DNA from: Paramoeba atlantica | Lineage: Eukaryota > Protista > Discosea | Assembly: GCA_977017575.1 (NCBI GenBank) | Contig: CDRNVI010000017.1 | Location: 1-64,000, forward strand | Length of the DNA: 64,000 nucleotides | Reading direction: 5' to 3' | Shown here: in pieces, positions 9,544-64,000 of the stretch | Layout: every line of letters starts with the position of its first letter | Position numbering within the stretch: the stretch's first letter is position 1 | Notes under the pieces: generated by a model | Told to the model about the DNA's origin: nothing | Database searches by the model: none | The model's input: only the letters and a program-made list of their open reading frames with translations | Made by a program: the position numbers and the translations under genes

Positions 9544-9999
9544 ACAACAACAACAACAACAACAACACTGATATAATCAGTTAAGGGGTTAATATTTTCC
9601 CTTAAACATCTTCACACCTTAGATTAAAAACACTGACCACACAACTGTTTGCCATATCTCAAATTTAATGTTTGTTTTAATGAGTCCTCGCATAATGATG
9701 AGTCTTTTCATTACAATAAACAAGGAAATGGAACCACCAACGCCCCTAGAGTTCAACGCAAATTGAAGGTATCAACTACTTGAGCGCTAAAATAAAACAA
9801 TACAACTAACATATAAACATGAACATAAAACTTATAACCTTATATATCTACAATAAATAATAAATATAGTAATAAGAATAAAAACAATCTGACAGAAAAA
9901 ACATGAATAAGAGCTGCTCGCCTTGTCCGGGCTACAAAATCGCTACTCAAAATTTGAAATTAGGGGGGGGGAATATATTTCACAAGATTTCAAATACCA

Positions 10000-12900
10000 T
10001 TAGTCACGTGAAACGCGTTCTGTAGAATGCTTTCTTTTTGTTTGTGGGCTTCGCAGCTTTGGTTTAATTTCACTTTTCCCGTCTATATTTGTCTGAGCCT
10101 TTTGGTTCTTGTTGTTTCGTTGAAGTTTTAGACGTTCTGGATCTTCGCTTCGCGTTCGTTTCGGAATATTATTCATCACGTCGTTTTTAGATGATTCCTT
10201 TGTTTTTACTTTGGTGTCACGTTTAGTTTGAAATTTTTCTTTTGGAGGATATTTTTCTTTTGAAGGATTGGGGTTCCTCTTTCCTGCTGGGTGATTGTCA
10301 ATACCCTCACGGGTGCTAATTAGTCTCTTCCCTATCACATTTCCGGAGCATCGCCTATAAGTGACGGCGTTGGTGTGATCAAGTGTTCCTGCTTCCTTGG
10401 AAAGCCAATCCGCTATTTCATTATGGGGGTTCCCCTCGTGGGCGCGAACTTTTACGCAAAACAAATTTTTCGATCCTGATTCAATTTTGATACAAATGTT
10501 GCACAGCTTTCGTAGGATTTCTGGATTTTGAAAGTCACTAAACCCTATCAATCTATTGCGGTGCCTGTGGATGTGAAAAAATTCCCATATGTAATGCGAA
10601 TCTGTGTGTACAACGATGTCTGTTCCATAATCTTTGGAAAATTGAAGTGCCTCAATCACCGCATAAAGTTCAACCGCTGTAATTGTACTTTCAATATCTT
10701 CCGGGGGCTTTTTGCTTACCATGACTTGATCAAAACCTTGTCCCAAAATATAAAACCCAGACCCACCTACAGATGCACCTTTCTTTGTGGATAGAGAACC
10801 ATCTGTATATATATGCAATTCACCTTTACGCCGAGCGTATGGTTTGGGACCTTCTTCTACGAATTGTGACGCTTTTGTGTTAGTGATTGCAGAAATTTTT
10901 CTTTCCCATCCAGATTTATTGAACTGTGTGTATGAAGGTCTTGGCTCCAACCGATCGCGAAGTTGATCAACTTTCTTTGCCCATGACGTTCGACTTACTG
11001 GATAATACAGCATCTCTGCTGTACTTAAATTGAGATCTTTCGCGCATAATTCGGAGACTGATCTATTTTTACTGGAATCTTCATCGCGCCATGACATTGT
11101 ATTACAGAAAACTGGTGAATGTCGTACTAAATGCCCTATTGAACTTGCTCGCTGACATTTAGAGACTGTACTGAGCTTGTTTTCTCCCTGATACAATGAT
11201 TCAAGACGCATGCTTCGTTGACCGTCCCAGGATTTATGTACGCAGCACACTATTCGTCTCATTTTAGAAATTTCAGTGTCCATTTTCAGTAAATCGGAGG
11301 TCGAGATCTTCCACGTGCTACAACCATAGGAAATAACTGGCATAACTAAAGTTTGAAATATACGAGTGCGGCAAAGAATTGAAAGAGGTGAGTTCCAAAC
11401 TGGACGCAGCCTGTGCATAGTATACCACCCAAGTCTAATCCGGTCCCTTGGGGTTGATAAGTTATCTTCGGGGTTTGTTGCATTACCTAAGTACCTATAT
11501 GTCTTCACTTTTGGTATTAGACCGAGGGAAGGCAAGACAAGTTCCTCATTTGTATCGGGACATTTTCCGATTGTCATCCATGCAGTTTTATTTATTCCCA
11601 TGTTCATTTTTAAATTTACTTTTCCTGCAACTTCTGCTAATTTTTCAAGCATATTTCCGAGTTCCTGCTTTGTATGCGCAAATAAAGCAATGTCATCTGC
11701 ATAATTTACATCCGAAATTCTAATAGCTTTTTCACCTCGACTTTTTGTTCCCGTAGAGTGCGTGACCAAGCCGTATGAGTTTTTATCAATTGCAGTTTCA
11801 AGAACGCGATCAAGAACCATAATAAATATGTAAGGGGCAAGAACATCACCCTGAAGTGTTCCCGTTGAAATTGGAAATTCTTCAGTGTTTCCGTATGGAG
11901 TCCTGATATACGCTCGTAAATCTGTGTAAATAGACATTATGACTCGTTCTAGGTTTTCAGGGATACCAAAAGCTTGCAGAGCTGCTCGAATAGCCTGCCA
12001 TGTAACCGATGGAAATGCTTGCTTAAAATCCACAAACCCGACAACCACACCACTACCCCTCATCGCCTTGGACGAAATTTCATTAAAAACCGCTTGTGCC
12101 CCATTTGTGGAGTGATGGGGGCGAAATCCAAATTGATTAGGACGCAGCATAGATTCTACCGCAGGTTGTATCCTTGTTAACACCATCCGGTTAAGCAATT
12201 TTACGACGTGATTCACTATACAAACAGGTCTCCAGTTGATGATTTCGCTAAGATTCCCCTTCTTAGGTATCGGAATTTGAAGAATTGTTTTCCATGAATC
12301 CGGAGATGCCCCTGTGAGGTAAATTTCATTCATAATTTCTAGGAGGATGCTGGATAGCTCGTCTTCTTGAACGATGGATCTTAAAACTTCTGCTGGAATA
12401 TTGTCAGCTCCAGGGCATTTTCCATACTTCATCTTAGAAATGGCATCCATTAATTCCACTTTTGTAAACATTTCGTCTAGTATAGGAATCTTGCACTTAC
12501 TAGAAGGCGTAAAAGCAAAGGATTGTGAGGCTATCGAGAGTGTATCTGTACTGTGAAAATGATTTCGTACAGCTATCAAGCCTTTTTGTGGAGAATCTCC
12601 GAAAACGGGAAAGTCCTTCTTATGTTCTCCAAGCATGGTTCTAATTGCTTTAAAAGCGGATTTAGGTTTTCGCTTTAAATCTTTCTCGATATTGTTGCAT
12701 TCAGAAATAATACATTCGTTCATTTCATTTGAATAGCGTTGTTCGCATACCTTAAATTTTTCCTTGTTTTTTGCGAGCCGTATTATTGACCCTAAGTTGA
12801 GATTATGAGTATTTGGTGATTTCTTTTCCTCAACGCTGCTAGCTAGTTTTGGAAGAGTTTTCGATGCAGCGATCAATGAGGAAGAGAATCTGCCCCATCG

Positions 12901-14268
12901 ATTAGTTTCTTCGGATTCTTTCTGGGATCTTTTACATGGAGCACGCATAGCTGCTTTGACACTTGCATTAAATTTTTGACTTGTTTCTGAATTTTTAAGA
13001 GAGTCCCAATATGGCCTATCCTCCTGTTCTCTGGCCTTGGTTTTCCAACGAATTTGGAAATTTACAATGACTGCACAATGGGGTGTCGGACAAGGGGCCA
13101 TCATTACTCGTTGTAAACGTACAGCTGAACAAAAGCGCGAATTAAAAACTATGTGATCTAATTGTTTTGTCTTCCCGTCTGGGTTTTTTCTGGTTGGTGG
13201 AAAACGAAAAGTCCATTTCCGAGGCGAGGTACAGGTCTCGTGGGCTGATTTCGCACCCAAACTCTCAAGAAACTCTCTTAAAGCCTTAGCTCTCTTTGAC
13301 GAGCATTTTCGGCCCGACGGATTCTGTAGAGGAGCGTTAAAGTCACCACAGATAATTTTTAGTGCTGCATTAGACTCGTGCCAAGCGTCAAACAGTGACT
13401 TATTAAAATCCTCCTGAATATCTTGTTTTGAAGAAGCAATGGGGGAATAAACATTGAATAGCGTTGCTTTTGTGCTTCCAAAACGAACCGTCCCTTTCAT
13501 AATTCTGTCAGAGACCTTTTCAACAAATAATTGCATGCGGCTAATAAATGCCATACCATTATATCCATTTATTGCGCTCATAAGATATACATGTAGCCAA
13601 ATGCCTTCAATATAGAGTTTACGATGAACTATCGGTTCGCTGCTTTCAAAAGTGAGCCTAGTTTCTTGCAATCCAAAGATAGGAGCCTTACAGCTCTTCA
13701 TAAAAACAACCACCTTTTGCAATCTGAGACACTTCCGCAGAGCGTTTACATCAGCGCTTTTAACCTTCAACGTGTCAATATTTAAGGTACCGATATTCAA
13801 CCCCTCGTTCATAGCTGATATCATGGGCTTCTGCTCTCGGACGCCGCGCCGAGAGCAGCATTTGCGATTCCTAAACCTTTTGCGATATACCTTTACCTTC
13901 AGAGTTGCTACTTTTCCGCCTTGAATTAAAATTCGGGAATCCTTCGGAGGGAATGGAAAAAGACAATCCTTAGCTACATCGTATCTGATCAGGCTGGACC
14001 CGTTCCCACACGATATAACCGTCCCTTCCCATAGCCTCGTACACTTATCATACGTAGTACACCACGCGACAGCAAAGCGCTTCCCTGAAGATAAAGATAA
14101 AGCCAGCCGGCTCAGGGCCCGCGGCCGGAGTAAAGCTACTCCCTCTCTCTGCCGAGGAGGCAAAAAGAGGTTTCCCCGCTTGAACGTGGCCCTTCGAAGT
14201 TTGTCCTGGATCAAAAGCAAAGATTCAAAGGGTCCGGACGCCTCCGCCCGAATTTTATCAATTTCCAT
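10000..14268 (-). CDS. LINE polyprotein: N-terminal beta-barrel-like domain, APE endonuclease, RT, RNase H
   Basis: 1422 aa; GLQETR, NVYSP, GDFNA, LDHI (APE); RPNQFGFR, FVDFKQAF, GTLQGDVLAP, NYADD (RT); IYTDGS, VELYA, HTDS, VRAHEGNPHNEIAD (RNase H). Confidence 0.95.
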   Translation of the reverse strand: MEIDKIRAEASGPFESLLLIQDKLRRATFKRGNLFLPPRQREGVALLRPRALSRLALSLSSGKRFAVAWCTTYDKCTRLWEGTVISCGNGSSLIRYDVAKDCLFPFPPKDSRILIQGGKVATLKVKVYRKRFRNRKCCSRRGVREQKPMISAMNEGLNIGTLNIDTLKVKSADVNALRKCLRLQKVVVFMKSCKAPIFGLQETRLTFESSEPIVHRKLYIEGIWLHVYLMSAINGYNGMAFISRMQLFVEKVSDRIMKGTVRFGSTKATLFNVYSPIASSKQDIQEDFNKSLFDAWHESNAALKIICGDFNAPLQNPSGRKCSSKRAKALREFLESLGAKSAHETCTSPRKWTFRFPPTRKNPDGKTKQLDHIVFNSRFCSAVRLQRVMMAPCPTPHCAVIVNFQIRWKTKAREQEDRPYWDSLKNSETSQKFNASVKAAMRAPCKRSQKESEETNRWGRFSSSLIAASKTLPKLASSVEEKKSPNTHNLNLGSIIRLAKNKEKFKVCEQRYSNEMNECIISECNNIEKDLKRKPKSAFKAIRTMLGEHKKDFPVFGDSPQKGLIAVRNHFHSTDTLSIASQSFAFTPSSKCKIPILDEMFTKVELMDAISKMKYGKCPGADNIPAEVLRSIVQEDELSSILLEIMNEIYLTGASPDSWKTILQIPIPKKGNLSEIINWRPVCIVNHVVKLLNRMVLTRIQPAVESMLRPNQFGFRPHHSTNGAQAVFNEISSKAMRGSGVVVGFVDFKQAFPSVTWQAIRAALQAFGIPENLERVIMSIYTDLRAYIRTPYGNTEEFPISTGTLQGDVLAPYIFIMVLDRVLETAIDKNSYGLVTHSTGTKSRGEKAIRISDVNYADDIALFAHTKQELGNMLEKLAEVAGKVNLKMNMGINKTAWMTIGKCPDTNEELVLPSLGLIPKVKTYRYLGNATNPEDNLSTPRDRIRLGWYTMHRLRPVWNSPLSILCRTRIFQTLVMPVISYGCSTWKISTSDLLKMDTEISKMRRIVCCVHKSWDGQRSMRLESLYQGENKLSTVSKCQRASSIGHLVRHSPVFCNTMSWRDEDSSKNRSVSELCAKDLNLSTAEMLYYPVSRTSWAKKVDQLRDRLEPRPSYTQFNKSGWERKISAITNTKASQFVEEGPKPYARRKGELHIYTDGSLSTKKGASVGGSGFYILGQGFDQVMVSKKPPEDIESTITAVELYAVIEALQFSKDYGTDIVVHTDSHYIWEFFHIHRHRNRLIGFSDFQNPEILRKLCNICIKIESGSKNLFCVKVRAHEGNPHNEIADWLSKEAGTLDHTNAVTYRRCSGNVIGKRLISTREGIDNHPAGKRNPNPSKEKYPPKEKFQTKRDTKVKTKESSKNDVMNNIPKRTRSEDPERLKLQRNNKNQKAQTNIDGKSEIKPKLRSPQTKRKHSTERVSRD

Positions 14269-14375
14269 TAATAAAATTTACAAGCTTAATAAAATTTACA
14301 AGCTTAATAAAATTTACAAGCTTAATAAAATTTACAAGCTTAATAAAATTTACAAGCTTAATAAAATTTACAAGC
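14268..14375. repeat. Tandem repeat (TTAATAAAATTTACAAGC)x6
   Basis: Read directly; abuts the L2 start codon. Confidence 0.97.
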
Positions 14376-17300
14376 TCTCTTGGGCCTTTCTATTTACACT
14401 CTCTTGGGCCTTTCTTCGAAACAGTGAAAATCGTCAAGCATTTATTACCAAAGTTCACTCTCAATCTGAGAAGGGGGGTAATATCAAGCAAGGGTGGGAA
14501 CGACTTTCGAACAGTATAATAACCGCCGCCAAAAATTTTAAGAAGCCACAAAAACGTACGATAAACAGAGAACCTATTAAGCATGTGAAGATAAATAACC
14601 TGCGGGGCCTTTATCAGAGAAGCAGACAGAAGACTACGTTTAATGAGTTAATAAAAGAACATAAAAAAGATATTGAACAGACCATTTCGGAAGAATGCTT
14701 AGAACTTGAGAACAAGCTTCGCAAGAATCACTCAAATCCATGGAGAACTCTTCGGCAAATATGTGGACAATACCGTACTCAGTTCAATACAAATGGTGAG
14801 ACGCGTGATATGAAACTACAAGCGATCGGTGAACATTTCTTAAAATTCAGTAATTATGATGCAGGAGATCCAAATATCAGTTTCGACCCTATTCCACCAT
14901 TATTCGTGCCGATCGAGGGTGGCCCATTTATTGTTGAGGAGTTGACTTTGTCAGTGAAGCATTTTGGGAGAGGACGAGCACCCGGAAGCGACGGAATACC
15001 TATGGAGGCCCTACAAGCTATCGCAAGTCACGAAGTTCTAAGAGAGCATCTTTTAGGTATAATAAACAAAGTTTATGAGACCGGGTCTACGGATGAAGCT
15101 TGGCGAATGACACTCCAGATACCCATACCAAAGAAAGGGGATCTCACTGACATTTCAAACTGGAGGCCGATATGTGTGGTGAATAGCGTTGTTAAACTGA
15201 TGAATCACATGATTCTTTCACGCATTCGGCCCAGCGTAGAAGGTTTCCTACGCGATAATCAGTATGGGTTTCGGCCAAACAGATCTACAGCTGGCGCCCA
15301 AATCATTATGAACGAGGTTAAAACCAAGGCTTTTCGAAAAGACGGAATAATGGTAGCCTTTGTAGATTTTGCTAAAGCATTTCCCTCCGTATCCTTTGCT
15401 GCTATAAAAGCCTGCCTAAATGCTTTCCGAGTTGGCAATCGATTGTCCACCACAATCTTGTCCATCTATCGCGACTTGAAAGGAACAGTTCGAACGCCGT
15501 TTGGTAATACTGAACCTTTTCCAATCACCACAGGGATTCTACAAGGGGATGTATTAGCTCCCTATCTATTCGTTATGGTGATGGACAGGATTCTACACAA
15601 GGCTCTCGACGACGGATCAGATGGTGTTCTTCTGAAATCTAGAGGTACACGAAAGCGAGGGTTAAACGAAAAACGACTGAGTGATATCGATTATGCCGAC
15701 GACGTCGCGCTATTTAGTGATTCGAGGGAAGGTTTGCAAAATATGATAAACAGCGTTTCTCGGGAAGCAGTCAAAGCTAATCTACGACTTGCGGTTGGTC
15801 AAACGAAAACTGCATGGATGTCTTTTGGTAAAGTTGCACGTTCCGAAAACGACCCCGTCATCTACAACAACAACTTGGAGGTACCAAAGGTGGGGTCATA
15901 CAGGCATCTGGGGCAACGTCAAGATCAAGATTTTTCTTCCACCGTAAAAGATCGATTAAAGCTTGCATTGGGATCACTCCATCGTTTAAATGGAATTTGG
16001 TCTTCTCCTCTAAGTGAAGGGATGAAACTTCGACTTTATGATGCCTTAGTTTACCCTGTGCTGAATTTTGGAATGGGAGCAGTTCATATTTCTCAAAAGG
16101 AGCTCCGTAAAATTGATATTGAGGTCAACACAATGAGAAGAATTGCCACCCGTTCAAACAAAGTTGATGAGTACGGGTTATGCTACCCCAACGCTTCTCT
16201 CTATGTTAATACCGACCGGTTTTCTACTATTCATAAAGTACAGCGAGCAAAACTGGTGGGACATATGATCCGTCATTCTTCAGACTTTCGGGAACTGATT
16301 CAATGGAAACAACGTAGCAACGCTAGATTACCTTCCCCAAGTGAAGCTTGTGTTAAAGATCTTGGCATTACTATTGAACAAGCATTGGTTTACGCCATGG
16401 ACCGCGAGCATTGGTTCAGAATTACAGAACAACTTCGTGACAACCTTGAACCAGCTGCAACCTATATAAAATCTGGCACGCAAAAGTGGAGAACCGCCGT
16501 CACAAAAGCCAAGAAGACTAAAGACTTGCGCGAGTTACAGTATATTGAAGAGTCAACGGATCCTTTCCCTAACTTTAAAGCTATGCAGATATATACGGAT
16601 GCTTCTATTAAGAGTATGGTTAGTTCTCAGGAAATTCGAAGTGGCGCTGGTATTGTGGTTATACCAACGAAAAAAGATCCAATAAGATGTTCAATCCCAC
16701 TGGAAGTTACAACAATTGAGAGAGCAGAACTTCAATCGTTTTATTTAGCTCTCAACAAATTGCCAGAAAATTCATGCGCGTGCTTGTTTCACACAGATTC
16801 GCATTACGTTTGGGACTTCTTTCACAATTTACGAAATAAACGGCGCATTGTGGGATACACTGGGACAAAAAATGGCGACCTAATGTATGATGTGGACGCA
16901 AAGCTCAGGTTACTAAAATTCCATTCGTATAATATATATTTGTGCAAGGTAAAGGCGCACATTGGAAACAAATGGAATGAGGAGGCAGATGGTCTAGCAC
17001 TTTTGGCATCACGAAAAGTGGCACGGGCTCCGACCCAAAAAAGGAGAAAAACGACTGCTAACTCGGAGGATAGTGAGAATTCACAACCGTTATGGTCTTT
17101 GAAAGCCTTACTCAAAAGGAAGTCCCTTGGAAATAAGCAAGCACGAGACATTCCATCATCCAAGCGCGAAGCTGAGGCGGAAGGGGTATTTCGAGGGAAG
17201 GTTGCGAGAGCTGGCGGTAATAGGAAACCGTCTAAGTAAGGAGAGAATTGATGGAATTATTTCTTTGCCAACTTAGAATACCTTGAGGATTATTCATAGG

Positions 17301-17444: not shown

Positions 17445-18044
17445 TGGGACCCTTACGGAAAAGCAGGCTACAAATAAATTGTATGCCGAATTGAATGTGA
17501 CCCTCATGCGAGCACAGGCTCGTATGATGGTTACACGCATGGCTGTGCCCGACCCGAACGAGCCCATCACGGAAGGATAGTGTCGGACCCAACGGATCCT
17601 ATGGTGGTGACATAGGCCACGGGTGCTGGTCGGGTCGACAGAGTCTATGCTCACGCCTAGCCCGCGAGGGCTAGGTACCCCAAGTGAGGTAGTACACGGG
17701 TAGTGAATCTCCTCCCCGTCGGCCAGCATCCTGTTTCGCGACCGTGTCGCTGTCGACACAGGCCCGCGCCTGCGCCCTCCCATATAGCAAGGGAAGGGTT
17801 CACAAGTCAGGCCGTGGAGTGGTCGAAAGACCCGGTCCGGAACGCGCGGATGGATTGGGCGTGGATTGCTTCCTTTTTTATTATTATTGTTATCAGAATC
17901 ATAAATAGCTTAAGGCAGGTTGAATTACTAGTTTTGGGCCACAACATGTGAAATTGCTAATTTGATTGCTTGTTTACAAATGATATACCCCCCCCCCAAT
18001 GGACCTTCATGGTTCATGTATTGGGTAATAAAAAAAAAAAAAAA
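17445..18044 (+). mobile_element. 3' remainder of type A copy 1 (ORF end at 17580, structured 3' UTR, A15)
   Basis: Continues A sequence after the TSD (EKQATNKLYAELN...PITEG*), matches 54535-54948. Confidence 0.92.
17621..17859 (+). ncRNA. Conserved structured 3'-UTR RNA module, type A copy
   Basis: Helices GGGTGCTGGTCG/CGGCCAGCATCC, CTCAC/GTGAG, CCTAGCCC-GCGA-GGGCTAGG, GTGTCG-CTGT-CGACAC, GGTC-GAAA-GACC; shared by families A-E. Confidence 0.7.
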
Positions 18045-19575
18045 GCGGACGGGGTCCTGGGGTTTGGAGGTTGTCCCTATAATTTTGGAAGGTTATGGAT
18101 GTTAATCGGTTAACAGCTCTTTATTCTCACGCCTTGTTTTTTCGGAAGCAAGGTTCCCCAATGTGAGGTAGAGATGAGTAAAGGTTTCCTTTGCTCTGCG
18201 GTTAGCGCCTTAATGTTTTTTAGCCGCGTCACTGTTGACACGGCCCTACGCATCACGCCTAGTTGCTCTACACTTCTAGGTACACAAGTTGGTCTAGGGC
18301 AGGGGTTAAAAGCGTAACCTGCGTAGCTCGTGTGAGCTTGTAAAGGGCGTGGCAGTGGACTGGTCATCTATTGCTATCGTTATCCTTTTGTGAGTTCTGG
18401 GATGGTATATGAAAAATTATTTTACTATGTGATTGGGCATTTCTTTGTTATTTTATTTTGATTGTGTGACGTGTGTGTGGGCAGGTTGGCCGAGGGTTCC
18501 GGTGGGGGGGAACCCCGTTAACAACGTGACACATTATTATTGGTTCTATGCAGGCTTTCTTTTGAACTATGTTTGTGCATGTGAATTCTATCTATATATC
18601 GTATTATGTGTTCTTTGATTTTGGGACGATTTGGAAGTGTGATTATATTAGTCATATGTATTTACTTTATATGTATTTATTTTTTTGAGGCTTTTGGGAG
18701 ATATGATTCAGGTACGTAATCACCTCCAGGCTCTTATTCTGTTGCTATCTGGTTTTTGATCGAACTACGGCACTGCCCGGTACCAAACATAACAAGGTAC
18801 TAAACAACTAGGGTGAGTGACCTGCATGCTTATTTTCATGTTTTCTTATTCTACATTTCACATTGTAGATTCTTTTATTGCTGTCCGGTTTCGATTTGAT
18901 TGTGGCACCATCCGGTACCGAATATAACAAGGTACTACACAACTAGGGTGACTGCCACACAGGATTTTTTTTCGGTTCGCGAGGCGAGTGAGTGTTCCTT
19001 ATTGTAAGACCTTTCCTTATTGTAAGACCTTTCCTTATTGTAAGACCTTTCCTTATTGTAAGACCTTTCCTTATTGTAAGATTTACTTATATTTGTTTGT
19101 TACTTATAAGTTTCATGGAGCCCCCTCGGCTTGGATTTCTAATAGTCCACGTTTTGAAATTTAGCCGAGGGGCTGTTATATATTTGCCTGCTGGCCCTTC
19201 GTGGCACATAGTTTCTTCGAATTATGATTTGTATTCAGAATTTTACATGGGATGGGTATTTACTATTATCTTATATATCCTTGTTAGGTTGTTATTTTAC
19301 TTTGCTTTAAGTTTTTGTGCCCACCCACCAAGCCCCCAGCCATTTGGCCGAGGGTTCCGGTGGGGGGGAATCCCGTTAACAACGTGACACATTATTATTG
19401 GTTTTATGCAGGCTTTCTTTTGAACTATGTTTGTGCATGTGAATTCTATCTATATATCGTATTATGTGTTCTTTGATTTTGGGACGATTTGGAAGTGTGA
19501 TTATATTAGTCATAGGTATTTACTTATATTTGTTTGTTACTTATAAGTTTCATGGAGCCCCCTCGGCGTGGATTT
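18045..19575. repeat. AT-rich non-coding region with internal direct repeats (unassigned)
   Basis: ~185-bp repeat at 18486-18670 / 19344-19527; ~55-bp repeat at 19081-19138 / 19518-19575; ~40-bp core repeat at 18777 / 18912. Confidence 0.75.
18995..19081. repeat. Tandem repeat (TTCCTTATTGTAAGACCT)x~4.8
   Basis: Read directly. Confidence 0.95.
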
Positions 19576-22016
19576 CACAAGTAAAAATCTTCGCATTCAT
19601 CGACGACATAAACCTAGCATCTGAGGACCAACTTTGAACACATGGAAGCGGGAGAACATCTTAGTGAGGCACAACGTCTGGAATTGGAAATCGACCGTCG
19701 CTCGATAAGGAATGCACTACAAGCGGCCAAGGCGGACAACCTCAGCAAGGCAACAAGAATTCTAGACAATATATACAAAGATTCATTCCTCAATGCTGAT
19801 GAGAAGTCGAACAAGCTTAGCGACCTTCACCCCAAAGGTCCCTTACCACAAAACATCGATGGAGACTTCCCTCGAATCGGGGTAGTTGATCAATCGGAGT
19901 TGCGTCAAGCGACGGCAAGGCTATCAAAAGGATCATCGCCAGGGCCCACAGGATTCAGTGAAAACATGATGAGACTTCTAGTAGAGGATGAGGAATCGTG
20001 TCTCGCACTCTGTCACATGTTCCGCGACGTCATCAACGGAGATCTCGCAGAAAACGTTCGTCAACGCCTAACTCGCTGCAGGATCATCGCGTTAGCAAAA
20101 CCTCAGAACGGGATACGACCAGTGGCAATGGGAGACACTATCCTCAAGATCTGCGGAACGATTCTTTTAATGCGACACAGCAATACAGTGGTTCCAGAAG
20201 GTTTTCCATTACAGTGGTTCCAGAAGGCCCCTCCCTGCGCTACCCAACCACTTCCATTAGAATCTTTGGGGGTAAACTTTCGGACGGATGCCATTAAGAT
20301 TCTTGGTGCTTACATTGGCGCGGACCAGGTGGTAGAAAGTTTGCTTCTTCAAAAACTCGAGAAACACAAATGTCTGTTCCGCAGACTCCTAAAGATGGGT
20401 CCGAGCAACCTCTCACTGGCCATTTTGCGACGCTGTACAATTCCGCGACACGATTATCATCTTCGCGTACACAGACCGAATGCCACTCTTCATTTAGCGC
20501 ATGTTTTCGACACAGAGGTGGGTAAGGTCTTGGAAAAGTGGTGCGGAGCTGACTCCAATGCTTTGCAACTCGCAGCACTTCCAAAAAAATTTGGTGGTTT
20601 AGGTATCACATCCACGATTCTGAAACACAAGTACTTCTTTGAAGCTGCCCAAACATCTATCGAAGAGCACCCAAAACCCATTAACGCTCCGGTAGGTTAT
20701 AAAGGTAGCGACAAAGGTCAGAAGAAAATGCAGGATCGAAAAGAGGTGGCACGAAAACTTCTGAAGAAGAACTTAAACACGGAGTATGAAAAGCAAGTCG
20801 CAGAACTTAAGAAACATTCGCATTTAGAGCTCATTCTGAACCGAAGCAAAGAAGCGAACTTACATTTAGAGAGTACGAATAACTATGTGAATCCTTACCT
20901 TTTCCGCTACACCCTAATGATGCGACTTGGAATAAGTCTACCGAAAGCGCCAATAAACGTCGTATGCCCGGGATGCTGTGGTCCAGAAACATCTTTTAGT
21001 ATTATTCCACATATCGCAGGATGCTCGAGATGCTCAGGTATGAACTGCACTCGTAAACACTCTCACATCGTGCGCTATCTAGCTGACTTGTGCGCGAAGG
21101 CAGGACTTCCGTGTGTTATCGAACCGCGAATTCACTCCTCATTTTATTGTACAAAGTGTAAATGCTCTATTTCTGCGGAGGTTTCTGACCAACATCCATG
21201 TAAGGCGCGCAGGATTCGATCTGGCCCCGACCTCGCTATCATGTGGCCCCATATGGGAGAAGTCCTCTATGATTTCACAGTGGTTCACACTTGCTGCAAC
21301 AGTTACAAGAAACAAACAAGCAACTACCTACTGCAGCAAGCCCAGGAAAGGAAGTTCAAGAAATATGTGACAGAGAAAGGTGTGGACAGTGAGGCATTTC
21401 GTTGCATCGCCGCCTCAGATTGTGGTGTGTTGCACAACGACACAAAACAACTATTAAAGGCGTTGGCTCAGCGCGCGAATCGAAAATATGAAAACGTGCG
21501 TGAGGCTTTTCAGCTGGAACTTGAAAAGCTATCGGCTTACACGGTAGTGTCTCAACTCCGAGATTACATCACCGATGAAAAGTGGATTGGGAGTTTACGA
21601 CTCTAAAAGAGTTCACTACCACACGTATATCTCCGTACAAATAAGTATTGATTAGTTGCCTTCGAATATATTAGGTCCTTTCGAATGTATTAGATACTGC
21701 TACTTCTGCATTGATTCTTCATCACGTTTGACAACAATTGGCGCGTATACAATAATTGATCCGGGAACTGTTCTTTTTTACTTTGAGGCTTTGCTGGTTT
21801 CGAGGGGACAAGTGTCATCCATGCTGTTTTATGCTGTTTTATGTGGTCCAACATATATTCGATTATTGAAAATTGTTGATCTTACCATGTGAATGGAACG
21901 ATGCGTATTGCATCGGTACACGAACATTGCCCCGTAGTTTGTTCAAATTAGTTTCTACGGATAGTTGCCGGGGATTTCCAGACGGCGAGTAAGTTCAAAA
22001 AAAAAAAAAAAAAAAA
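19576..22016 (+). mobile_element. Type F element copy 2, 5'-truncated, with in-frame internal loss of the RT core; A20 tail
   Basis: ORF 19642-21606 has GIRPVAMGD then jumps to the thumb region; no D..NAF, QG or YxDD motifs; CCHC and RLE intact. Confidence 0.88.
19642..21606 (+). pseudogene. RT-deleted F polyprotein (654 aa; retains CCHC + RLE)
   Basis: Comparison with the G1 ORF shows the segment between ..LKICGTILLMRH and ..VVPEG/WF is missing. Confidence 0.8.
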
Positions 22017-22259
22017 GCGATGACCGTAAATTTCTGGTAGAGTGAAGTTCGAGTTGTGTCATCGCAACTTTCCTTTTGCGAGTGGAAAAAGGTTATAAGT
22101 CACTAGAGTAAAATAATGTATAGTATAGTATGCTAAAAGTATAATTACATGGTTCCCCCCGGAGGGGGCAAAATCAGGTACATATATGTATATGTGCCCC
22201 GTAGGGCCACGGTCAAAGAATAAATATTTTCTTCAAGCAATTCTTTCCGTAAACTCTAA

Positions 22260-22903
22260 GGATAACCGATCACCTAGGCGACCCTTGGAAACACGAAGGC
22301 AACACCAACAGACTATTAAGGACAGCACCCTCGGCGAACAAACGCCGACACGCTCTCAGCCAGCCCACCAGATCCAATCACCTCCAAAGCATTCCTCCGG
22401 CACAAAACCCATGACTAGCGAAACTGGTTGTTCCGAAGCACAATCGGACGGTAGGCGCGAAGACTTTGGCAACAGATATGCCCCACGAAACGGAAGCGAC
22501 AAGCCCCCACCACTTCCGCAGAGCGCTCCCAAACACCGCATCTGTCCTGCTGAAGGATGCGCCTGGCGCACGATTGCACATGGAGGGTCTTGGCAAGCAT
22601 TTTATAACCACGTAGCGTACCACCACAGTACCGGCGTCCCGGCTGCATGGTGGGCAGCGGAAGGCAAGTTCCTTTGTGAAACGTGCGGCAAACACTACAC
22701 GCTCAACCGTAAAACTACGCACCCGAAGACCTGCATCGGTCAATCAAGTCAAGCAGCACAAATGTCAGTAGATATTTTTTCGCAGCACTCCATCGTAACA
22801 GAAACCGCCGAATTACCTACTTTGGCAAGTGTCTGCACACTCGCGAAGAGCACATGTAAAGACGTGCCCCACCGATGCCGTCAGCTGTGGGCGGAGATCT
22901 TAA
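22260..22903 (+). pseudogene. Type A internal fragment (2x C2H2 region); duplicated at 38899-39542
   Basis: Same 5' breakpoint as 4974; ends at GAGATCTTAAC and joins G2. Confidence 0.9.
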
Positions 22904-23628
22904 CCTCGGCAATTTTCTTCAACCTCGGCAATTTTCTTCATTTCAGTGCTCCGGATGCCAGAATAGTGTAACCGAGGAAAATCTCACAGAACACCAGCGC
23001 AGCTGTCGCGGCAGTGTCCGCAGATCTGGGCCCGACCTTATGATCTACTGGGCAGACGGTCCGATGTATTATGACCTAACTGTAGTTCACGAGTTTTCAG
23101 CAGCTCACATAAACAAAACGCCTCAAAAAATGATGAACGAAGTCATCACGAAGAAACGCGACCGTTACGTAACTTCTGGGATGATTGCGAATGATCGTTT
23201 CATGTGTATCCCTGTCCTTTCGGGTGGAGCGCTACATAAGCATACAAAACGTCTATTAACAGCTTTAGCAGATCGTTGCCTTATTTAGAATTCAGGAGCG
23301 ATGTCTGACCCAGATGGAGCGATAACTCTAGAGCGCCCAAAACTCCCTTTCAGCTCGGGCTGTCGATCCACCAGGTTCAATTTCTCCTTACGCTTTTTAA
23401 GACTGAGAGGATAAAAATGGAGGCTCTCCAAGAAGACGTGCAGAGCGGCAGTATTAGGGAAGTTGGAAAGAAGTGTGAAGGTGAGTAGTCAAAGGCTGCG
23501 AGTTGCAGCAAACAGATCGTGCGTCCTTCTAATGTTGAAGGCTTGAAAGTAGTAGTGCTTGATATGCTTTTTTTTGTTTACTAAAAGTTTACGAAAAGAA
23601 TTGTACAATGGAAATTTTGATTTCTGAG

Positions 23629-23663
<35 letters not shown>
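22904..23663 (+). mobile_element. 5'-truncated G2 fragment (RLE C-terminus, stop 23288, ~345-nt trailer, A31); duplicated at 39543-40302
   Basis: FQCSGC..RRSGPDLMIYWADGPMYYDLTVVHE is homologous to the G1 RLE; poly(A) 23633-23663. Confidence 0.85.
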
Positions 23664-23665
<2 letters not shown>

Positions 23666-23699
23666 TTAACGATAAAGATACAGTTTCTGTACCTTGTTG
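23662..23699 (+). other. Spliced-leader-like sequence at the 5' end of B copy 1
   Basis: AACTTTAACGATAAAGATACAGTTTCTGTACCTTGTTG; the core ACAGTTTCTGTAC..TTG matches euglenozoan SL exons; followed by AATT, not GT. Confidence 0.78.
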
Positions 23700-23735
23700 A
23701 ATTATTTTTCTTTCCCTATTTCTTTTATCCGGACA

Positions 23736-26700: not shown

Positions 26701-27575
26701 GGGCACGTTGGATATCTCAATCTGGAAAAGGGGCAGGTGACTGGCTGTTTGTCACGCCCTCCAGGGAAAAGGGGCACGCCTTTACTAAAACGGAGTTCCG
26801 CACCCTGTGCACCTGGTGGCTAGGACAAAAAGTATATCCAGAAACACACCCCTGTCCCGTCTCAGGCTGCACGCTTCCGATGGGACCACAAGGAGACCAC
26901 GCATTGGTCTGTAAACACGACTACGGGATCTCTGCGAGGCATAATGCCTTGGCCCTCCAGTTCTTTGACGTTTGTCAAAAGGCCAATTTGTCTCCGAAAA
27001 GGGAGCACAGCCTCGGCAACAGAGGTCCAGGGGGGGCACTCACAAGACCAGGGGATGTGTTCCTTCCGAGCTACACGCTCGGTAAAGGCCTTGTCTTTGA
27101 TTTTGCGGTGACCCACGTCCAGCAACAGAAATATACGGACCTGGTCCGTTCTGCTGGCATGGTAGCTGCAGGGGCCTTCGCAGAGAAATATGCAACGAAC
27201 CACAAGCGTGGACAAAGGCAAGAGGCTATAGAGGCCGGGCATGATTTCACCGCCATGGTAGTGGAATCGTACGGATCATGGAGTCCGACGTCCCTCCATA
27301 TGCTGAAGAAGATCGCGGGAAAAAGAGCCGCAACATGTAAGGGTGATATGTCCGAGCAAGCGTCAATGTTTTTTCTTCTCCAGGACATGAACGTTACGCT
27401 CATGCGGTCTCAGGCACGAATGCTTGTAAGACGCATGGCAGACGTGTATATCCATGCCAGTCTCGCTTTACTGCACGAGGCACCCTCTGACACCACACCA
27501 AATCGTGCCAGCTGCGGACCGGCAGGAGCGATCGAGCCTACAGTGCCTATTCTCACGCCTCGCCTTCGTGAGTGA
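23736..27575 (+). CDS. B polyprotein (1279 aa from ATG): N-terminal GSWDQF domain, 2x C2H2, RT, CCHC, RLE
   Basis: CPVEVC..HVASQH, CPSC..HEEKC; RPIAAGETIRRL, KVDLRNAFN, GVQQGDPLGP, WYLDD; CPVSGC..HALVC; RPGDVF..FDFAVTH. Confidence 0.95.
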   Translation: MREADSCGSTTIREDDLFAQEEKTHTPGSWDQFEGNQHLIAATSTYDESLYTTPIPENITPAWQDKMETALQSLHREKQTPDTGMILSADEERNHSSVSRDCAPNTSGKGQEVTSQTPERYEPHSMATARLLPRKSPLSSQKSTPKIFERGVSKDSKTRQPARRDTMRRRTCPVEVCNWSTASHGGKWQAYYHHVASQHSDTVPSEWWEKEGRFLCPSCGKHYDHNKKASHEEKCQDSLGSYTSSLTCEPETEEASISQIYKDSLPSLDCVCSYAINTCKDVPFRCRQQWASVLTQTMAAVVRENSVEAWTRLAMLPKCVLPAPKRGGRKGNSSYTTKTSQRMDRWESREYAALWNESVAQMVKKRERSDDEEVDESGKAAKRAELLARQGEFSRAMAALTAAPMAPESEETYEKLQSKHPGRLPLSSSVTFRPIEGEPLHLSEGEVEKALRSFRRGTSAGTMGLRPEHLQSALAAHPDDKVQPLFYLKEVMNLLLSGKGCLQVQKFFGGARLCALEKGENDVRPIAAGETIRRLVSKAACSAVKEKASKLLWPHQYGVATPAGAERLIHLCRHVMASQAGSSDFTLCKVDLRNAFNNISRTAFAALTREHFPELSPWVEWCYTTESILTYGFRQISSKEGVQQGDPLGPLLFSLVMQMVTTEIDRQLPGLLKLNLWYLDDGILGGKAQDVRRALDIIERVGPQWGIFLNANKCEAITHPESAEHLDSFGNIPTTKKTSEGNFSILGSPVGTTDFCTEFLREHTLLPAEESLAAIEYMEDPQVSLALIRQCAGFSQMAYSLRTTPTNSVHELCEELDTAILHTTERSICPLNEDAAAQVQRPKSYGGFGLRSSAMHASSAYVSSVSFAADKDNWNSLDAKDFADAVLDVNSRAGTSVLEEKTGLISPQHASSLSHLKKVLGLRGSKRPLPANLPVAPPGDTTTPYFEQTKLDHEFSSSNDRVARQKVLSRAISSREYTDAYQKADPQTRARWISQSGKGAGDWLFVTPSREKGHAFTKTEFRTLCTWWLGQKVYPETHPCPVSGCTLPMGPQGDHALVCKHDYGISARHNALALQFFDVCQKANLSPKREHSLGNRGPGGALTRPGDVFLPSYTLGKGLVFDFAVTHVQQQKYTDLVRSAGMVAAGAFAEKYATNHKRGQRQEAIEAGHDFTAMVVESYGSWSPTSLHMLKKIAGKRAATCKGDMSEQASMFFLLQDMNVTLMRSQARMLVRRMADVYIHASLALLHEAPSDTTPNRASCGPAGAIEPTVPILTPRLRE

Positions 27576-27652
27576 GGTACCCCAAGGTGAGATAGGTAGG
27601 GATTCGGACTGACAGTCCTATTTCAGCACGAAGACGCCATGGTATCCAGGAC

Positions 27653-27891
27653 GGGTGCTGGTCGGGTCGACAGAGTCTATGCTCACGCCTAGCCCGCGAG
27701 GGCTAGGTACCCCAAGTGAGGTAGTACACGGGTAGTGAATCTCCTCCCCGTCGGCCAGCATCCTGTTTCGCGACCGTGTCGCTGTCGACACAGGCCCGCG
27801 CCTGCGCCCTCCCGTATAGCAAGGGAAGGGTTCACAAGTCAGGCCGTGGAGTGGTCGAAAGACCCGGTCCGGAACGCGCGAATGGATTGGG
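27653..27891 (+). ncRNA. Structured 3'-UTR module, B copy 1 (B copy 2 at 44292-44530)
   Basis: Nearly identical to the type A module despite divergent ORFs. Confidence 0.7.
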
Positions 27892-28028
27892 CCTGGATTG
27901 CTTGTTTTTATTTTTACTGTTTCTTGTTTGTCGTATATACTTAGGGGAGATTGAATTGCTAGTTTTGGGCTTAGAAAAAAGAAAAAGAAAATATACTTCT
28001 GTGGAAATAAAAAAAAAAAAAAAAAAAA

Positions 28029-28191
28029 GACGGCTGCACGCAAACTCAAGAATATAGTATATAAGTTCTAAACACAATATCACTATAAGCTGAGTCAGCT
28101 TATAAAATTATATAGATTTCATTTTCGGGATAGTTTCTCTTTGAAAATTGAGAGAAGGGGGGAAGGTAAAAAAAAAAAAAAAAAAAAAAAA
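28029..28191 (+). mobile_element. Short poly(A)-tailed 3' fragment ('tag') of unknown element
   Basis: ~140 nt + A24; contains hairpin TATAAGCTG-AGT-CAGCTTATA. Confidence 0.6.
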
Positions 28192-28534
28192 GCTCCTCAA
28201 GGGCTAGGTACTCCAAGTGAGGTAGGACATGGGTCGGGAACTAAAACTTCCTCCCCGTCGGCCAGCACCCTGTTTCGCGACCGTGCCGCTGTCGGCACAA
28301 GCCCGCGCCTGCGCCCTCCCATATAACAAGGGAAGGGTTCACAAGTCAGGCCGAGGAGTGGTCGAAAGACCCGGTCCGGAACGCGCGAATGAATTGGGCA
28401 TAAATTGCTTCTTTTTATTATTATTGTTATCAAAATCATAAATAACTTAAGGCAGGTTGAATTACTAGTTTTGGGATACAACATGTGAAATTGCTAATTT
28501 GATTGCTTGTTTAATAAAAATAAAAAAAAAAAAA
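28192..28534 (+). mobile_element. Tag consisting of a partial structured 3' module, distal UTR and poly(A)
   Basis: Begins inside the module (GGGCTAGGTACTCC); variant helix GTGCCG-CTGT-CGGCAC; distal part resembles 17860-17990. Confidence 0.85.
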
Positions 28535-28699: not shown

Positions 28700-28763
28700 G
28701 TGAATCTCACTTTTTACACCCACATCAAAGATCTCCGATGAAGCTCGGACGCTCAAATCCGCA

Positions 28764-32225: not shown

Positions 32226-32280
32226 CACGATGACGGATGTGCAAGATGGGCCGCTCAGCCGGAACCCGAACAGCTGGTCC

Positions 32281-32525
32281 GGATGCTGGTCGATGCCGGC
32301 AGGGTCTATGCTCACGCCTAGTCCGCCAGGGCTAGGTACTCCAAGTGAGGTAGGACATGGGTAGGGAACTTTGTTCCTCCCCGTCGGCCAGCATCATGCT
32401 CCGCGACCGTGCCGCTGTCGGCACAGGCCCATTGCTTGCGCCCTCTCGTACAACAAGAGAAGGGTTACCAAGGCAAGCTGGGAGAGGTCGAAAGACCCGG
32501 TCCGGAACGCGCGAATGGTTCGGGG
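32281..32525 (+). ncRNA. Structured 3'-UTR module, divergent C copy
   Basis: Compensatory changes: CCCTCTC/GAGAAGGG, GCTTGC/GCAAGC, GTGCCG/CGGCAC. Confidence 0.72.
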
Positions 32526-36857: not shown

Positions 36858-37092
36858 GGGTGCTGGTCTCGTCGACAGAGTCTATACTCACGCCTAGTCC
36901 GTCAGGGCTAGGTACCCCAAGTGAGGTAGTACACGGGTAGTGAATCTCCTCCCCGTCGGCCAGCATCCTGTTTCGCGACCGTGTCGCTGTCGACACAGGC
37001 CCGCGCCTGCGCCCTCCCGTATAACAAGGGAAAGGTCCACAAGTCAGGCCGTGGAGAGGTCGAAAGACCCGGTCCGGAACGCGCGAATGGTT
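36858..37092 (+). ncRNA. Structured 3'-UTR module, D copy (second D copy at 44760-44993)
   Basis: Central ~120 nt essentially identical to the B module. Confidence 0.7.
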
Positions 37093-43300: not shown

Positions 43301-44667
43301 AGTACACCGATGCATATCAGAAAGCTGATCCTCAAACGAGGGCACGTTGGATATCTCAATCTGGAAAAGGGGCAGGTGACTGGCTGTTTGTCACGCCCTC
43401 CAGGGAAAAGGGGCACGCCTTTACTAAAACGGAGTTCCGCACCCTGTGCACCTGGTGGCTAGGACAAAAAGTATATCCAGAAACACACCCCTGTCCCGTC
43501 TCAGGCTGCACGCTTCCGATGGGACCACAAGGAGACCACGCATTGGTCTGTAAACACGACTACGGGATCTCTGCGAGGCATAATGCCTTGGCCCTCCAGT
43601 TCTTTGACGTTTGTCAAAAGGCCAATTTGTCTCCGAAAAGGGAGCACAGCCTCGGCAACAGAGGTCCAGGGGGGGCACTCACAAGACCAGGGGATGTGTT
43701 CCTTCCGAGCTACACGCTCGGTAAAGGCCTTGTCTTTGATTTTGCGGTGACCCACGTCCAGCAACAGAAATATACGGACCTGGTCCGTTCTGCTGGCATG
43801 GTAGCTGCAGGGGCCTTCGCAGAGAAATATGCAACGAACCACAAGCGTGGACAAAGGCAAGAGGCTATAGAGGCCGGGCATGATTTCACCGCCATGGTAG
43901 TGGAATCGTACGGATCATGGAGTCCGACGTCCCTCCATATGCTGAAGAAGATCGCGGGAAAAAGAGCCGCAGCATGTAAGGGTGATATGTCCGAGCAAGC
44001 GTCAATGTTTTTTCTTCTCCAGGACATGAACGTTACGCTCATGCGGTCTCAGGCACGAATGCTTGTAAGACGCATGGCAGACGTGGATATCCATGCCAGT
44101 CTCGCTTTACTGCACGAGGCACCCTCTGACACCACACCAAATCGTGCCAGCTGCGGACCGGCAGGAGCGATCGAGCCTACAGTGCCTATTCTCACGCCTC
44201 GCCTTCGTGAGTGAGGTACCCCAAGGTGAGATAGGTAGGGATTCGGACTGACAGTCCTATTTCAGCACGAAGACGCCATGGTATCCAGGACGGGTGCTGG
44301 TCGGGTCGACAGAGTCTATGCTCACGCCTAGCCCGCGAGGGCTAGGTACCCCAAGTGAGGTAGTACACGGGTAGTGAATCTCCTCCCCGTCGGCCAGCAT
44401 CCTGTTTCGCGACCGTGTCGCTGTCGACACAGGCCCGCGCCTGCGCCCTCCCGTATAGCAAGGGAAGGGTTCACAAGTCAGGCCGTGGAGAGGTCGAAAG
44501 ACCCGGTCCGGAACGCGCGAATGGATTGGGCCTGGATTGCTTGTTTTTATTTTTACTGTTTCTTGTTTGTCGTATATACTTAGGGGAGATTGAATTGCTA
44601 GTTTTGGGCTTAGAAAAAAGAAAAAGAAAATATACTTCTGTGGAAATAAAAAAAAAAAAAAAAAAAA
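37734..44667 (+). repeat. ~6.9-kb segmental duplicate of 21095-28028 (F tail - spacer - A fragment - G2 - SL - B)
   Basis: Constant offset of 16639 across all ORF-track entries; a few substitutions distinguish the copies. Confidence 0.95.
40301..44667 (+). pseudogene. Full-length B copy 2 (SL-like 40301-40338) with nonsense mutation
   Basis: CAA>TAA at 41542-41544 splits the ORF into 40375-41544 and 41563-44214. Confidence 0.93.
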
Positions 44668-45196
44668 TCTCACGCATGCCGGCTGAAGATCCACAACCGG
44701 CACTTATTTTGCAGTAGCCTAAACCAAGGCTCGCGGATCCCGGCATGTTCGAAGGCTGAGGGTGCTGGTCTCGTCGACAGAGTCTATACTCACGCCTAGT
44801 CCGTCAGGGCTAGGTACCCCAAGTGAGGTAGTACACGGGTAGTGAATCTCCTCCCCGTCGGCCAGCATCCTGTTTCGCGACCGTGTCGCTGTCGACACAG
44901 GCCCGCGCCTGCGCCCTCCCGTATAACAAGGGAAAGGTCCACAAGTCAGGCCGTGGAGAGGTCGAAAGACCCGGTCCGGAACGCGCGAATGGTTGAGGAG
45001 CCGCCTGCAGGCCGGGTGAGGCGAAGCTGAGGGAGACCTTACCCCCCCCTGAAAAGTTGAAAAGTTGGGTAGGTGAAAGCAGGAAAGTAGGGAGAAAGGT
45101 GGGAAAAGTATGTCAAGAGGTGAGAAAGAGGAGAAAGAGAGAGAAAAATTTTCTTTATTTGCATAAAAACAAAAAAAAAAAAAAAAAAAAAAAAAA
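44668..45196 (+). mobile_element. 5'-truncated D (last ~50 nt of ORF + 3' UTR + A26)
   Basis: Matches 36766-37291. Confidence 0.93.
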
Positions 45197-54079: not shown

Positions 54080-55113
54080 CTGAAGGGGATCACGCACTCG
54101 TGTGCAAACATGGACAAGGTATAATAAACCGGCACAATTCCCTGGTTGAACATTTTTCCTCCTTCTGCGGGCATGCCTCTTTGGCACCCCAACGAGAGCA
54201 CAGTCTTGGCAATCGAGGTCCCGGAGGGGGGCTCACCAGGCCAGGCGATGTGTTTCTCCCCACGTATTCCAAGGCTAAAGGCATGGTCCTTGATTTTGCA
54301 GTTACCCACGCTCAGCAAACTAAATACACGGACAAAGTTCGTAACGCTAGCTGGGTAGCTGCAGGATCATTCGCCGAGCACTACGCCGCGGAAAAAAAGG
54401 TGCACCAACGGTTGGAGGCTGAGGAAGCAGGCCATGAATTCACAGCCATGGTGGTAGAGAGCTATGGCTCCTGGAGCGTGAGCGCAACGTCCGTTCTAAA
54501 GGGAGTCGGAAAGAGGCGGGCACAGGCCTCAAATGGGACCCTTACGGAAGAGCAGGCTACAAATAAATTGTATGCCGAATTGAATGTGACCCTCATGCGA
54601 GCACAAGCTCGTATGATGGTTACACGCATGGCTGTGCCCGACCCGAACGAGCCCATCACGGAAGGATAGTGTCGGACCCAACGGATCCTATGGTGGTGAC
54701 ATAGGCCACGGGTGCTGGTCGGGTCGACAGAGTCTATGCTCACGCCTAGCCCGCGAGGGCTAGGTACCCCAAGTGAGGTAGTACACGGGTAGTGAATCTC
54801 CTCCCCGTCGACCAGCATCCTGTTTCGCGACCGTGTCGCTGTCGACACAGGCCCGCGCCTGCGCCCTCCCATATAGCAAGGGAAGGGTTCACAAGTCAGG
54901 CCGTGGAGTGGTCGAAAGACCCGGTCCGGAACGCGCGAATGGATTGGGTCTGTATTGCTTGTTTTAGTTTTTACTGTTTCTTGTTTGTAGTATATACTTA
55001 GGGGAGATTAAATTGCTAGTTTTGGGCTGAGAAAAAACAAAAGGTACATCTGTGGAAACAAAAAGAATTGCTAATTTGATTGCTTGTTTTCAACTCAAAA
55101 AAAAAAAAAAAAA
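54078..55113 (+). mobile_element. 3' remainder of A copy 2 (RLE, stop 54669, 3' module 54710-54948, A17)
   Basis: Resumes after the TSD; RPGDVFLP, AMVVESYGSW. Confidence 0.93.
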
Positions 55114-63400: not shown

Positions 63401-64000
63401 TTCCTCAATGGAGAAGGGCAAGCAGCGTCGAGAAGCCGTAGAGGCAGGATGCGACTTTACGGCCATGGTTGTCGAAAGTTATGGCGCCTGGAGCCCCAGC
63501 GCTTCAGCCGTGCTCCGCAAAGTCGGTGAGAGGTGTTCGCACGCCTCGGGGGGTCTACTTTCGGAAGGTGAGGCAACGAGCCGAATCTTCGCTGAACTAA
63601 ACATAACCCTTATGCGCTTTCAAGCGCGCATGATGGTTGCTCGTTCACCTTCCGAAGACCCCATCGCAACTCTGGAGGAATAGCCTCCAGAGCGGCCCGA
63701 GGCCGATCGAGCCGACAGTGCCTATCCTCACGCCTCGCTTTCACGAGCAAGGTACCCCAATGTGAGACAGGTATGGATTCGGAACATTCATCCGAATCCG
63801 GCGATCAAAACCCAACTTCGTGACCGTGCCGCTGTCGGCACATGCCCGCGCCTGCGCCCTCCCGCATAACAAGGGAAGGGTTCCCAAGCCAGGCCGTGGA
63901 GAGGTCGAGAGACCCGGTCCGAAGCGCGCACTGCTGGAAGAAGGGGTGGAGCACTCGCGGATTGATTTCTGGGGGGAAGTGAGGGAAAGAGGAGGGCAAA
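60484..64000 (+). mobile_element. Type E 3' part: second C2H2, RT, CCHC, RLE (stop 63683) and rearranged 3' module; runs off the window
   Basis: WYLDD, CPMPKC..HALSC, RPGDIYLP; module remnants at 63715-63775 and 63820-63930. Confidence 0.93.

Follow-up and report, generated by a model that had tools for sequence, protein, structure and literature searches.

In the window analysed here, a stretch of 64,000 nt, poly(A)-tailed retrotransposons are arrayed head to tail, and in the poly(A) map almost all of them lie on the + strand. The main occupants carry a single long ORF with an RVT_1 reverse-transcriptase (RT) domain. The C-terminus of this ORF has a CCHC motif followed by RPGD...LDFAV, which we read from its sequence as the signature of a restriction-like endonuclease (RLE). 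The best matches of these proteins among solved PDB structures were R2 proteins. We class the elements, which are the hosts of the RNA module described below, as poly(A)-tailed RLE-type (CRE/R2-like) non-LTR retrotransposons, the CRE-like label being taken solely from the order of domains and the PDB matches to R2. Nested among these elements are APE-RT-RNase H elements. One, at 8374-17290, interrupts a family A element and itself carries a second one in reverse orientation (10000-14268); this insertion makes the module at 17621 look as though it came after an RNase H ORF. A run of about 60 tandem 18-mers (52874-54091) separates a minus-strand APE-RT-RNase H element from the 3' portion of a family A element. 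Fragments of just 100-500 nt that end in poly(A), among which 5' truncation is extreme, are stacked head to tail at 28029-28191 and 28535-28699, and at locus L004 (1-4310). Insertion seems to target existing poly(A) tracts.

Full-length copies in four families begin with a 36-nt spliced-leader (SL)-like sequence directly after the poly(A) of the previous element, and their other end is poly(A). The 36 nt contain ACAGTTTCTGTAC, which occurs at six + strand sites in the window as compared with 0.09 expected by chance (the SL-like starts are at 23664-23699, 32792-32828, 37527-37559, 40303-40338, 45197-45232 and 55321-55356, each right after poly(A)). This 12-mer core is the kinetoplastid spliced-leader core of the published literature. 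With a kinetoplastid-type core on their 5' ends, the elements appear to have been copied from trans-spliced, polyadenylated RNA, and the genome carrying the array is very probably euglenozoan. Site-specific insertion inside spliced-leader RNA genes, as in CRE, was not seen: the SL-like sequence forms the first 36 nt of full-length copies and is fused to the 5' UTR of the element, and the copies sit after poly(A) tracts. The fusion is thus better read as trans-spliced RNA that was retrotransposed than as insertion into an SL gene. In one case (37525-38655), what follows the SL is just the final 1.1 kb of an APE-type element.

Copies of a 3'-UTR module behind at least seven ORF families

In families A, B, C, D and F, a GC-rich module of ~230-232 nt begins 15-77 nt downstream of the stop codon. 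Copies were sought with blastn, nhmmer and a covariance-model search (cmsearch), and all three recovered the nine copies listed in the original prediction. The window holds seven full copies, one truncated, one divergent, two partial F-like copies of domain I and one AT-rich paralog; the two partial copies and the paralog (18091-18334) had been omitted from that list.

The reference copy, in family A, lies at 17621..17852 (+ strand, as are all the module features given here), 40 nt after the ORF stop (17578-17580). It scored 302 bits, and its minimum free energy was -118.7 kcal/mol (z -3.3 as compared with shuffles). The variable tail downstream of it is AT-rich and ends in poly(A) (17853..18044, the poly(A) being at 18030-18044). 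The second family A copy (54710..54941; blastn, cmsearch) has a different, B-like tail, and tail types assort independently of ORF family. Family B carries the module at 27653..27884, within a full-length element (23664-28028), and at 44292..44523 (blastn, cmsearch). The stop codon of each family B copy is overlapped by a partial F-like domain I (P2-P3-P4), at 27529..27610 (nhmmer E 2.4e-12) and, as its twin, at 44168-44249, apparently a relic left when an earlier 3' end was replaced. The family C module (32281..32517) is 86-88% identical and has compensatory changes in the helices P6, P7, P8 and PK described below. Family D contributes the copies at 36858..37089 (blastn, cmsearch) and at 44760..44991, the latter a full module in a 5'-truncated element that starts at 44668, after poly(A). 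The module itself is 5'-truncated in variant E (28192..28391), which begins within P3 directly after poly(A). The last copy had been described as partial, at about 63820; it is complete and divergent, belongs to family F (63698..63928; 71-73% identical, 202 bits), and has a fully replaced P4, a shortened P1 and GAGA as its P9 loop.

The five families originally counted proved to be a lower bound. Further contigs of the same ENA assembly (n = 5) held more module copies and two more ORF families bearing the module, H and I, giving at least seven in all. Read contigs showed further upstream contexts. The module sits 130-400 nt upstream of poly(A), with the variable tail between. Word depth in three runs of the organism was 19,000-36,000 over the module as compared with 70-500 over the family B ORF, and summed word depth in these runs was higher for domain II than for domain I. 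The high depth fits many 5'-truncated copies from many families. The single RNA-labelled run yielded no contig for this stretch.

A two-domain fold maintained by double changes

RNAalifold applied to nine copies gave two domains, which were refined to nine helices, P1-P9. In the reference copy, domain I of this alignment-based fold (17621..17731) comprises P1 (17621-17632/17720-17731), P2 with its core CTCAC/GTGAG (17643-17654/17684-17695), the P3 hairpin (17655-17663/17668-17676), a conserved 3'-side internal loop, ACCCCAA (17677-17683), and the variable P4 hairpin (17696-17719). The same architecture was obtained in an independent fold of the AT-rich paralog, G. Domain II (17733..17843), also from the alignment-based fold, comprises P5 (17733-17743/17834-17843), the P6 hairpin with the loop CUGU (17744-17759), P7 (17763-17773/17806-17817; double changes in 6 of 10 pairs), P8 (17774-17781/17791-17799), a conserved CACAAG junction and the P9 GNRA hairpin (17821-17832). 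A small GAGT/GCTC hairpin in the RNAalifold consensus was rejected in favour of an extension of P2, which was backed by single-sequence folds and by folds of the G paralogs.

Pairs were counted in a structure-blind MAFFT alignment (A4) of twelve distinct sequences; a model-fitted alignment (A2), in which 5'-truncated copies were padded with unrelated sequence, was left out of the counting. Standard pairs were found in 91.8% of 854 cells, as compared with 32-45% when the 3' partners were slid by 1-3 columns. Double changes, drawn from about 5-6 independent lineages that all come from one genome, occurred in 24 of 75 pairs, as compared with 2-9 in the slid controls and 10+/-2.2 in shuffles, and none of 500 shuffles reached the observed value. 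Most of the unpaired cells in P2 resulted from a one-base misalignment of F and G; the CTCAC/GTGAG core is intact in every sequence. P4 forms a hairpin in all eight of its variants, which are unrelated in sequence (A, C, E, F, G1, G2, the B relic and a read-contig variant). Every helix originally listed was present, and the compensatory changes quoted for them were correct (alignments A1 and A4). The ACCCCAA loop, the CACAAG junction and the CUGU and GNRA loops are invariant while unpaired. The sense strand paired better than the antisense strand (91.8% as compared with 85.1%), with 78 G-U cells, which points to a role at the RNA level.

The cores of the two domains are alike, each with a short closing helix, a GCC...GGU hairpin and a C/A-rich 3'-side loop (ACCCCAA or UCACAA). 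The likeness was about 1.9-4.1 SD, mostly about 3, above shuffles, so that an internal duplication is weakly supported.

A long-range helix that competes with P6

Two pseudoknots had been suggested, of which one was borne out. TACCC/GGGTA lacks compensatory changes, and its pairing fails in F, G1, G2 and two A-like copies. The other, which we call PK, joins GTCGACAG at the P1/P2 junction (17634..17641) to CTGTCGAC (17750..17757), which is made up of the P6 loop and the first four bases of the P6 3' strand. Its strands are complementary in every lineage; 98.9% of cells pair, as compared with 23-64% in slid controls. Three of its eight pairs show compensatory changes: U-A to C-G in C and F, G-C to A-U in G1, and G-C to A-U in G2.

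PK crosses P1 and excludes four of the six P6 pairs. The same substitutions that keep PK also maintain P6, resulting in three-way covariation, and in every lineage the intrinsic stability of the PK duplex exceeds that of the P6 hairpin. PK may tie the two domains together, alternate with hairpin P6 or act between molecules.

A paralog near the 5' end of a different unit

The full-length AT-rich paralog G at 18091..18334 was recovered by the covariance model at 52 bits (E 7e-16), and a second copy, at locus L001 (2150-2423), scored 46 bits over the full length of the model. Its identity to the module is roughly 55-60% as estimated by eye, yet it matches the full covariance model. P1-P8 and PK are kept with many compensatory changes, and P9 is absent or ambiguous. 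The 3' end of domain II is ambiguous too, in that GGTTAAAAGC could be the P5 3' strand or a P9-like hairpin. When folded alone, the G paralogs recovered P1, the extended P2, P3, the internal loop and P4, that is, the same domain I.

The unit that bears G (18045-19640; L001 2104-3053) opens with GCGGACGGGG directly behind poly(A), and G is near its 5' end, about 50 nt in for the window copy. The window copy has internal direct repeats (18486-18681 = 19344-19538) and abuts an internally deleted APE-type RT ORF (19642-21606). At L001, the unit runs on into gag (CCHC) and RT/RT_RNaseH ORFs.

Taken together, PK and G admit a more far-reaching interpretation, which we hold to be distinctly unlikely: the module might be a bistable RNA that switches between P6 and PK, for example between an mRNA form and a template form for target-primed reverse transcription (TPRT), and the same domain might have moved between classes of retroelement. 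The first part is suggested by the retention of both P6 and PK through triple covariation, and the second by the position of G at the 5' end of a gag/RT_RNaseH element. A smaller share of the same slender probability goes to a new class of ribozyme.

Exchange of 3' ends accounts for most of the conservation

The module had been described as far more conserved than the ORFs. Mean pairwise identity over seven families was 82-90% for the module, as compared with 40-70% for ORF DNA, 37% for the 60 nt upstream and about 50% for the tail, and the C-terminal 700 residues were only 52-66% identical among eight families. The contrast is therefore real; that it arises mainly from purifying selection is contradicted by the pattern of identity. 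Modules of A and B are 100% identical, those of D, H and I 95-98%, C 86-88% and F 71-73%. Five families whose proteins are 52-61% identical share modules that are 95-100% identical, identical modules stand behind proteins that are 54% identical to each other, and the 5' boundary of module identity is sharp. Mosaics were read directly from the flanks, greedy clustering being too coarse. One family A ORF end and its module are followed by two different tails (17621 as compared with 54710 and L004 8223), the module and tail of family I are of D type and its protein is 58% identical to that of D, and family B keeps the F-like domain I relic ahead of an A-type module.

The near-identical modules behind diverged proteins, and the mosaic combinations of ORF, module and tail, show that 3' ends have been exchanged between families, with the crossover at or near the module. 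As judged from these comparisons, the extreme conservation of the module is mostly a product of recent 3'-end exchange and not mainly of purifying selection; selection alone could not account for 95-100% identity that extends to the loops. The older variants C, E, F and G are the sole source of evidence for functional constraint.

These observations raise the question of whether the module has any function of its own. It might be a GC-rich stretch homogenized by gene conversion or template switching within arrays, in which the helices are incidental; near-identity that includes the loops across such diverged families, the sharp 5' boundary and the mosaics show that most of the conservation comes from recent exchange and not from selection. 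Exchange does not explain why the older variants keep every helix via double changes, or why P4, replaced wholesale, is still a hairpin. In addition, the slid-partner controls, in which relatedness is preserved, yield far fewer compensatory pairs, and that several apparently active families have repeatedly fixed the same 3' end itself suggests an advantage. We consider a module devoid of function very unlikely.

A role at the DNA level is a further alternative, for instance as an endonuclease landing pad, a recombination hotspot or a source of cDNA-strand hairpins that promote head-to-tail growth of the array. Resident copies do have new copies inserted behind them, inter-family crossovers map to the module borders, and the antisense strand still pairs at 85%. 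The insertions, however, are at poly(A) tracts 130-400 bp away and occur also behind family N, which has no module, and the conserved G-U pairs favour the sense RNA. Such a role is highly improbable.

Recognition by the RT as the preferred role

The original prediction left the choice between an RT-binding signal and a new self-cleaving ribozyme or processing element that would cut read-through array transcripts into units. The second alternative now appears extremely improbable. In its favour, the fold is compact, conserved and pseudoknotted, with invariant unpaired bases, and there are precedents in non-LTR elements, namely HDV-like ribozymes in R2 and L1Tc (PMC4035085) and twister variants in Schistosoma (PMC8501958). 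None of the ribozyme core folds (HDV-like, hammerhead, twister) was matched in Rfam searches of the whole window and of the module regions. Across the whole window, no Rfam family, the R2 RNA element included, reached its gathering score; relaxing the threshold to E<=10 in the A/G and F module regions yielded nothing beyond fragmentary matches 14-23 nt long, none of them to a ribozyme family. Position argues in the same direction. To our knowledge, retrotransposon ribozymes sit at the 5' end of the unit. The module lies in the 3' UTR rather than at or upstream of the unit's 5' end, where a releasing ribozyme would be placed, and a cut within it would leave the ORF without its tail and poly(A). 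Full-length copies in four families start with the SL-like 36-mer and end in poly(A), which indicates that both ends come from host machinery, through SL addition and polyadenylation, and that no ribozyme is needed to release monomers. Finally, the 5' ends of truncated copies are scattered instead of falling at one site, and word depth is without a single step. Several of these ends lie just 3' of a helix (28192; L004 1815, 2727 and 3910; L001 15301), and RT pausing at structure would fit this small number of cases.

The first alternative fared better. A structured 3'-UTR RNA with covariation, common to diverged RLE-type families, is the setting expected for an RT-binding or TPRT signal. The R2 protein binds a folded, pseudoknotted 3' UTR that is needed for TPRT (PMC11194090, PMC12222951, PMC11601368), and stringent LINEs recognize a stem-loop in the 3' tail (PMC4176376, PMC1636434). 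As in an R2-type recognition RNA, the module is placed directly downstream of the RT-RLE ORF in the 3' UTR, and it has a conserved secondary structure with compensatory changes (in about 5-6 lineages of one genome). In its position after the RT-RLE stop, its size, pseudoknotted fold, invariant motifs and interchangeability, it resembles the R2 3' UTR and the stringent-LINE tails. The high word depth would likewise be expected of the part kept by every 5'-truncated copy. By analogy with the R2 3' UTR, we therefore favour, with a confidence somewhat above an even balance, a module that acts as an RT/RNP recognition domain for TPRT.

Such a module would work as follows. The two-domain pseudoknotted RNA in the 3' UTR would be recognized by the RT/RNP of the element as the template handle for TPRT, which would add new copies behind the poly(A) tract of resident copies. 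Because the elements appear to prime on poly(A)/poly(T) tracts, we infer that some feature other than poly(A) must mark the right template, and the module is the obvious candidate. The GCC...GGU hairpin and C/A-rich internal loop of each domain may provide two similar sites of protein contact. Proteins of different families would accept the same module, so that 3' ends (the module with or without its tail) could easily be swapped by recombination or template switching, and exchange within this shared sequence would in turn bring about the near-identity between families. Protein binding and the part played in TPRT are deduced from this context.

Three observations count against recognition by the RT. 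Family N (P0002; L001 10001-12836), which is CRE-like and 55-61% identical to the others, as close as they are to one another, has a short AT-rich 3' UTR lacking the module and has nevertheless left truncated copies (L004 1646-1756); the module is thus not obligatory in the clade. Secondly, the module is 130-400 nt upstream of poly(A), unlike the R2 structure at the very 3' end. Thirdly, the occurrence of G near the 5' end of a unit leading into gag/RT_RNaseH ORFs (L001) is at odds with a purely 3'-UTR signal for TPRT.

The first and third of these would suit some other post-transcriptional role, such as protection from exonucleases, export, localization, translation or evasion of silencing, in which the module spreads by raising RNA levels. 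The closely related family N manages without the module, and a paralog near the 5' end of a different class of retroelement is better suited to a general RNA-fitness element than to an RT-specific handle. The fold and the sense-strand bias argue for a function in RNA without specifying which. Conversely, the known stability and translation elements in Rfam gave no match, and the internal loops of the module are C/A-rich, unlike the U-rich loops of the ENEs that clamp poly(A). The position right after the RT ORF stop and the R2 precedent favour RT recognition, and we regard another post-transcriptional role as unlikely.

Should the module prove to be an RT handle, an RLE-type clade outside animals would have a defined RNA recognition domain backed by covariation, and with it a compact RNA-protein pair to compare with R2-based insertion systems. 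The elements would then offer natural swap experiments, in which proteins 54% identical to each other carry the same module and a sister family has none, and from these the protein regions that must co-vary with the RNA could be found; family N provides a natural control for module function. The module would also illustrate how crossovers at a shared 3' segment bring ORFs and tails of different families into new combinations.

Comparison with known systems

Within the sequences covered by our searches, the module seems to be confined to the present lineage. The conserved P2-P3 core had no match when JGI metagenome contigs were scanned for its pattern. Loci of distant RT relatives at 37-43% identity (L002, L005, L008 and L009) had no module in searches with filters off, over 3' flanks of 0-430 nt, of which three of the loci offered little or none. 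The RT relatives at 41-43% identity (L002 and L008, both JGI metagenome contigs) carry a PABP-type MLLE domain (PF00658) within the same ORF, and L008 has a long A-rich 3' region at its end.

Of the systems compared, the Pr77 hallmark of trypanosomatid L1Tc/ingi, which includes an HDV-like ribozyme (PMC4035085), is similarly a conserved structured RNA common to several retroposon families in a euglenozoan-type genome. Pr77 is 77 nt long, lies at the 5' end of APE-type elements and acts as promoter and HDV-like ribozyme (PMC4035085), whereas the module is 3', about 232 nt long, without an HDV-like match and carried by RLE-type elements.

The 3' tails shared by stringent LINEs and their partner SINEs (UnaL2, ZfL2; PMC1636434, PMC4176376) are closer, being 3' RNA structures common to different mobile elements that use the same or related RTs. 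In these tails an internal loop is functionally important and, as with the module, 3' ends have been exchanged between lineages. The same 3' structure in different elements was indeed found here, behind at least seven ORF families. The tails of UnaL2 and ZfL2 are single short stem-loops next to terminal repeats; the module has nine helices in two domains, belongs to at least seven autonomous families and is separated from poly(A) by a variable tail of 130-400 nt rather than being adjacent to a 3' terminal repeat or poly(A).

The 3' UTR of R2 is likewise a folded RNA of about 250 nt directly after the single RT-RLE ORF of an RLE non-LTR element. It contains a pseudoknot, and its structure is conserved more than its sequence, as in the older variants of the module. 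The module has no detectable homology to it in sequence or structure and no Rfam match, and is followed by a 130-400-nt variable tail and poly(A), whereas the R2 structure ends at the target junction. The hosts also differ, being CRE-like elements of a protist that uses spliced leaders, which insert behind poly(A) tracts and not in rDNA. The module thus represents a folded RNA family absent from Rfam, of a kind that is known, and new in its detail: the two domains, the competition between hairpin and pseudoknot, and the cross-class paralog.
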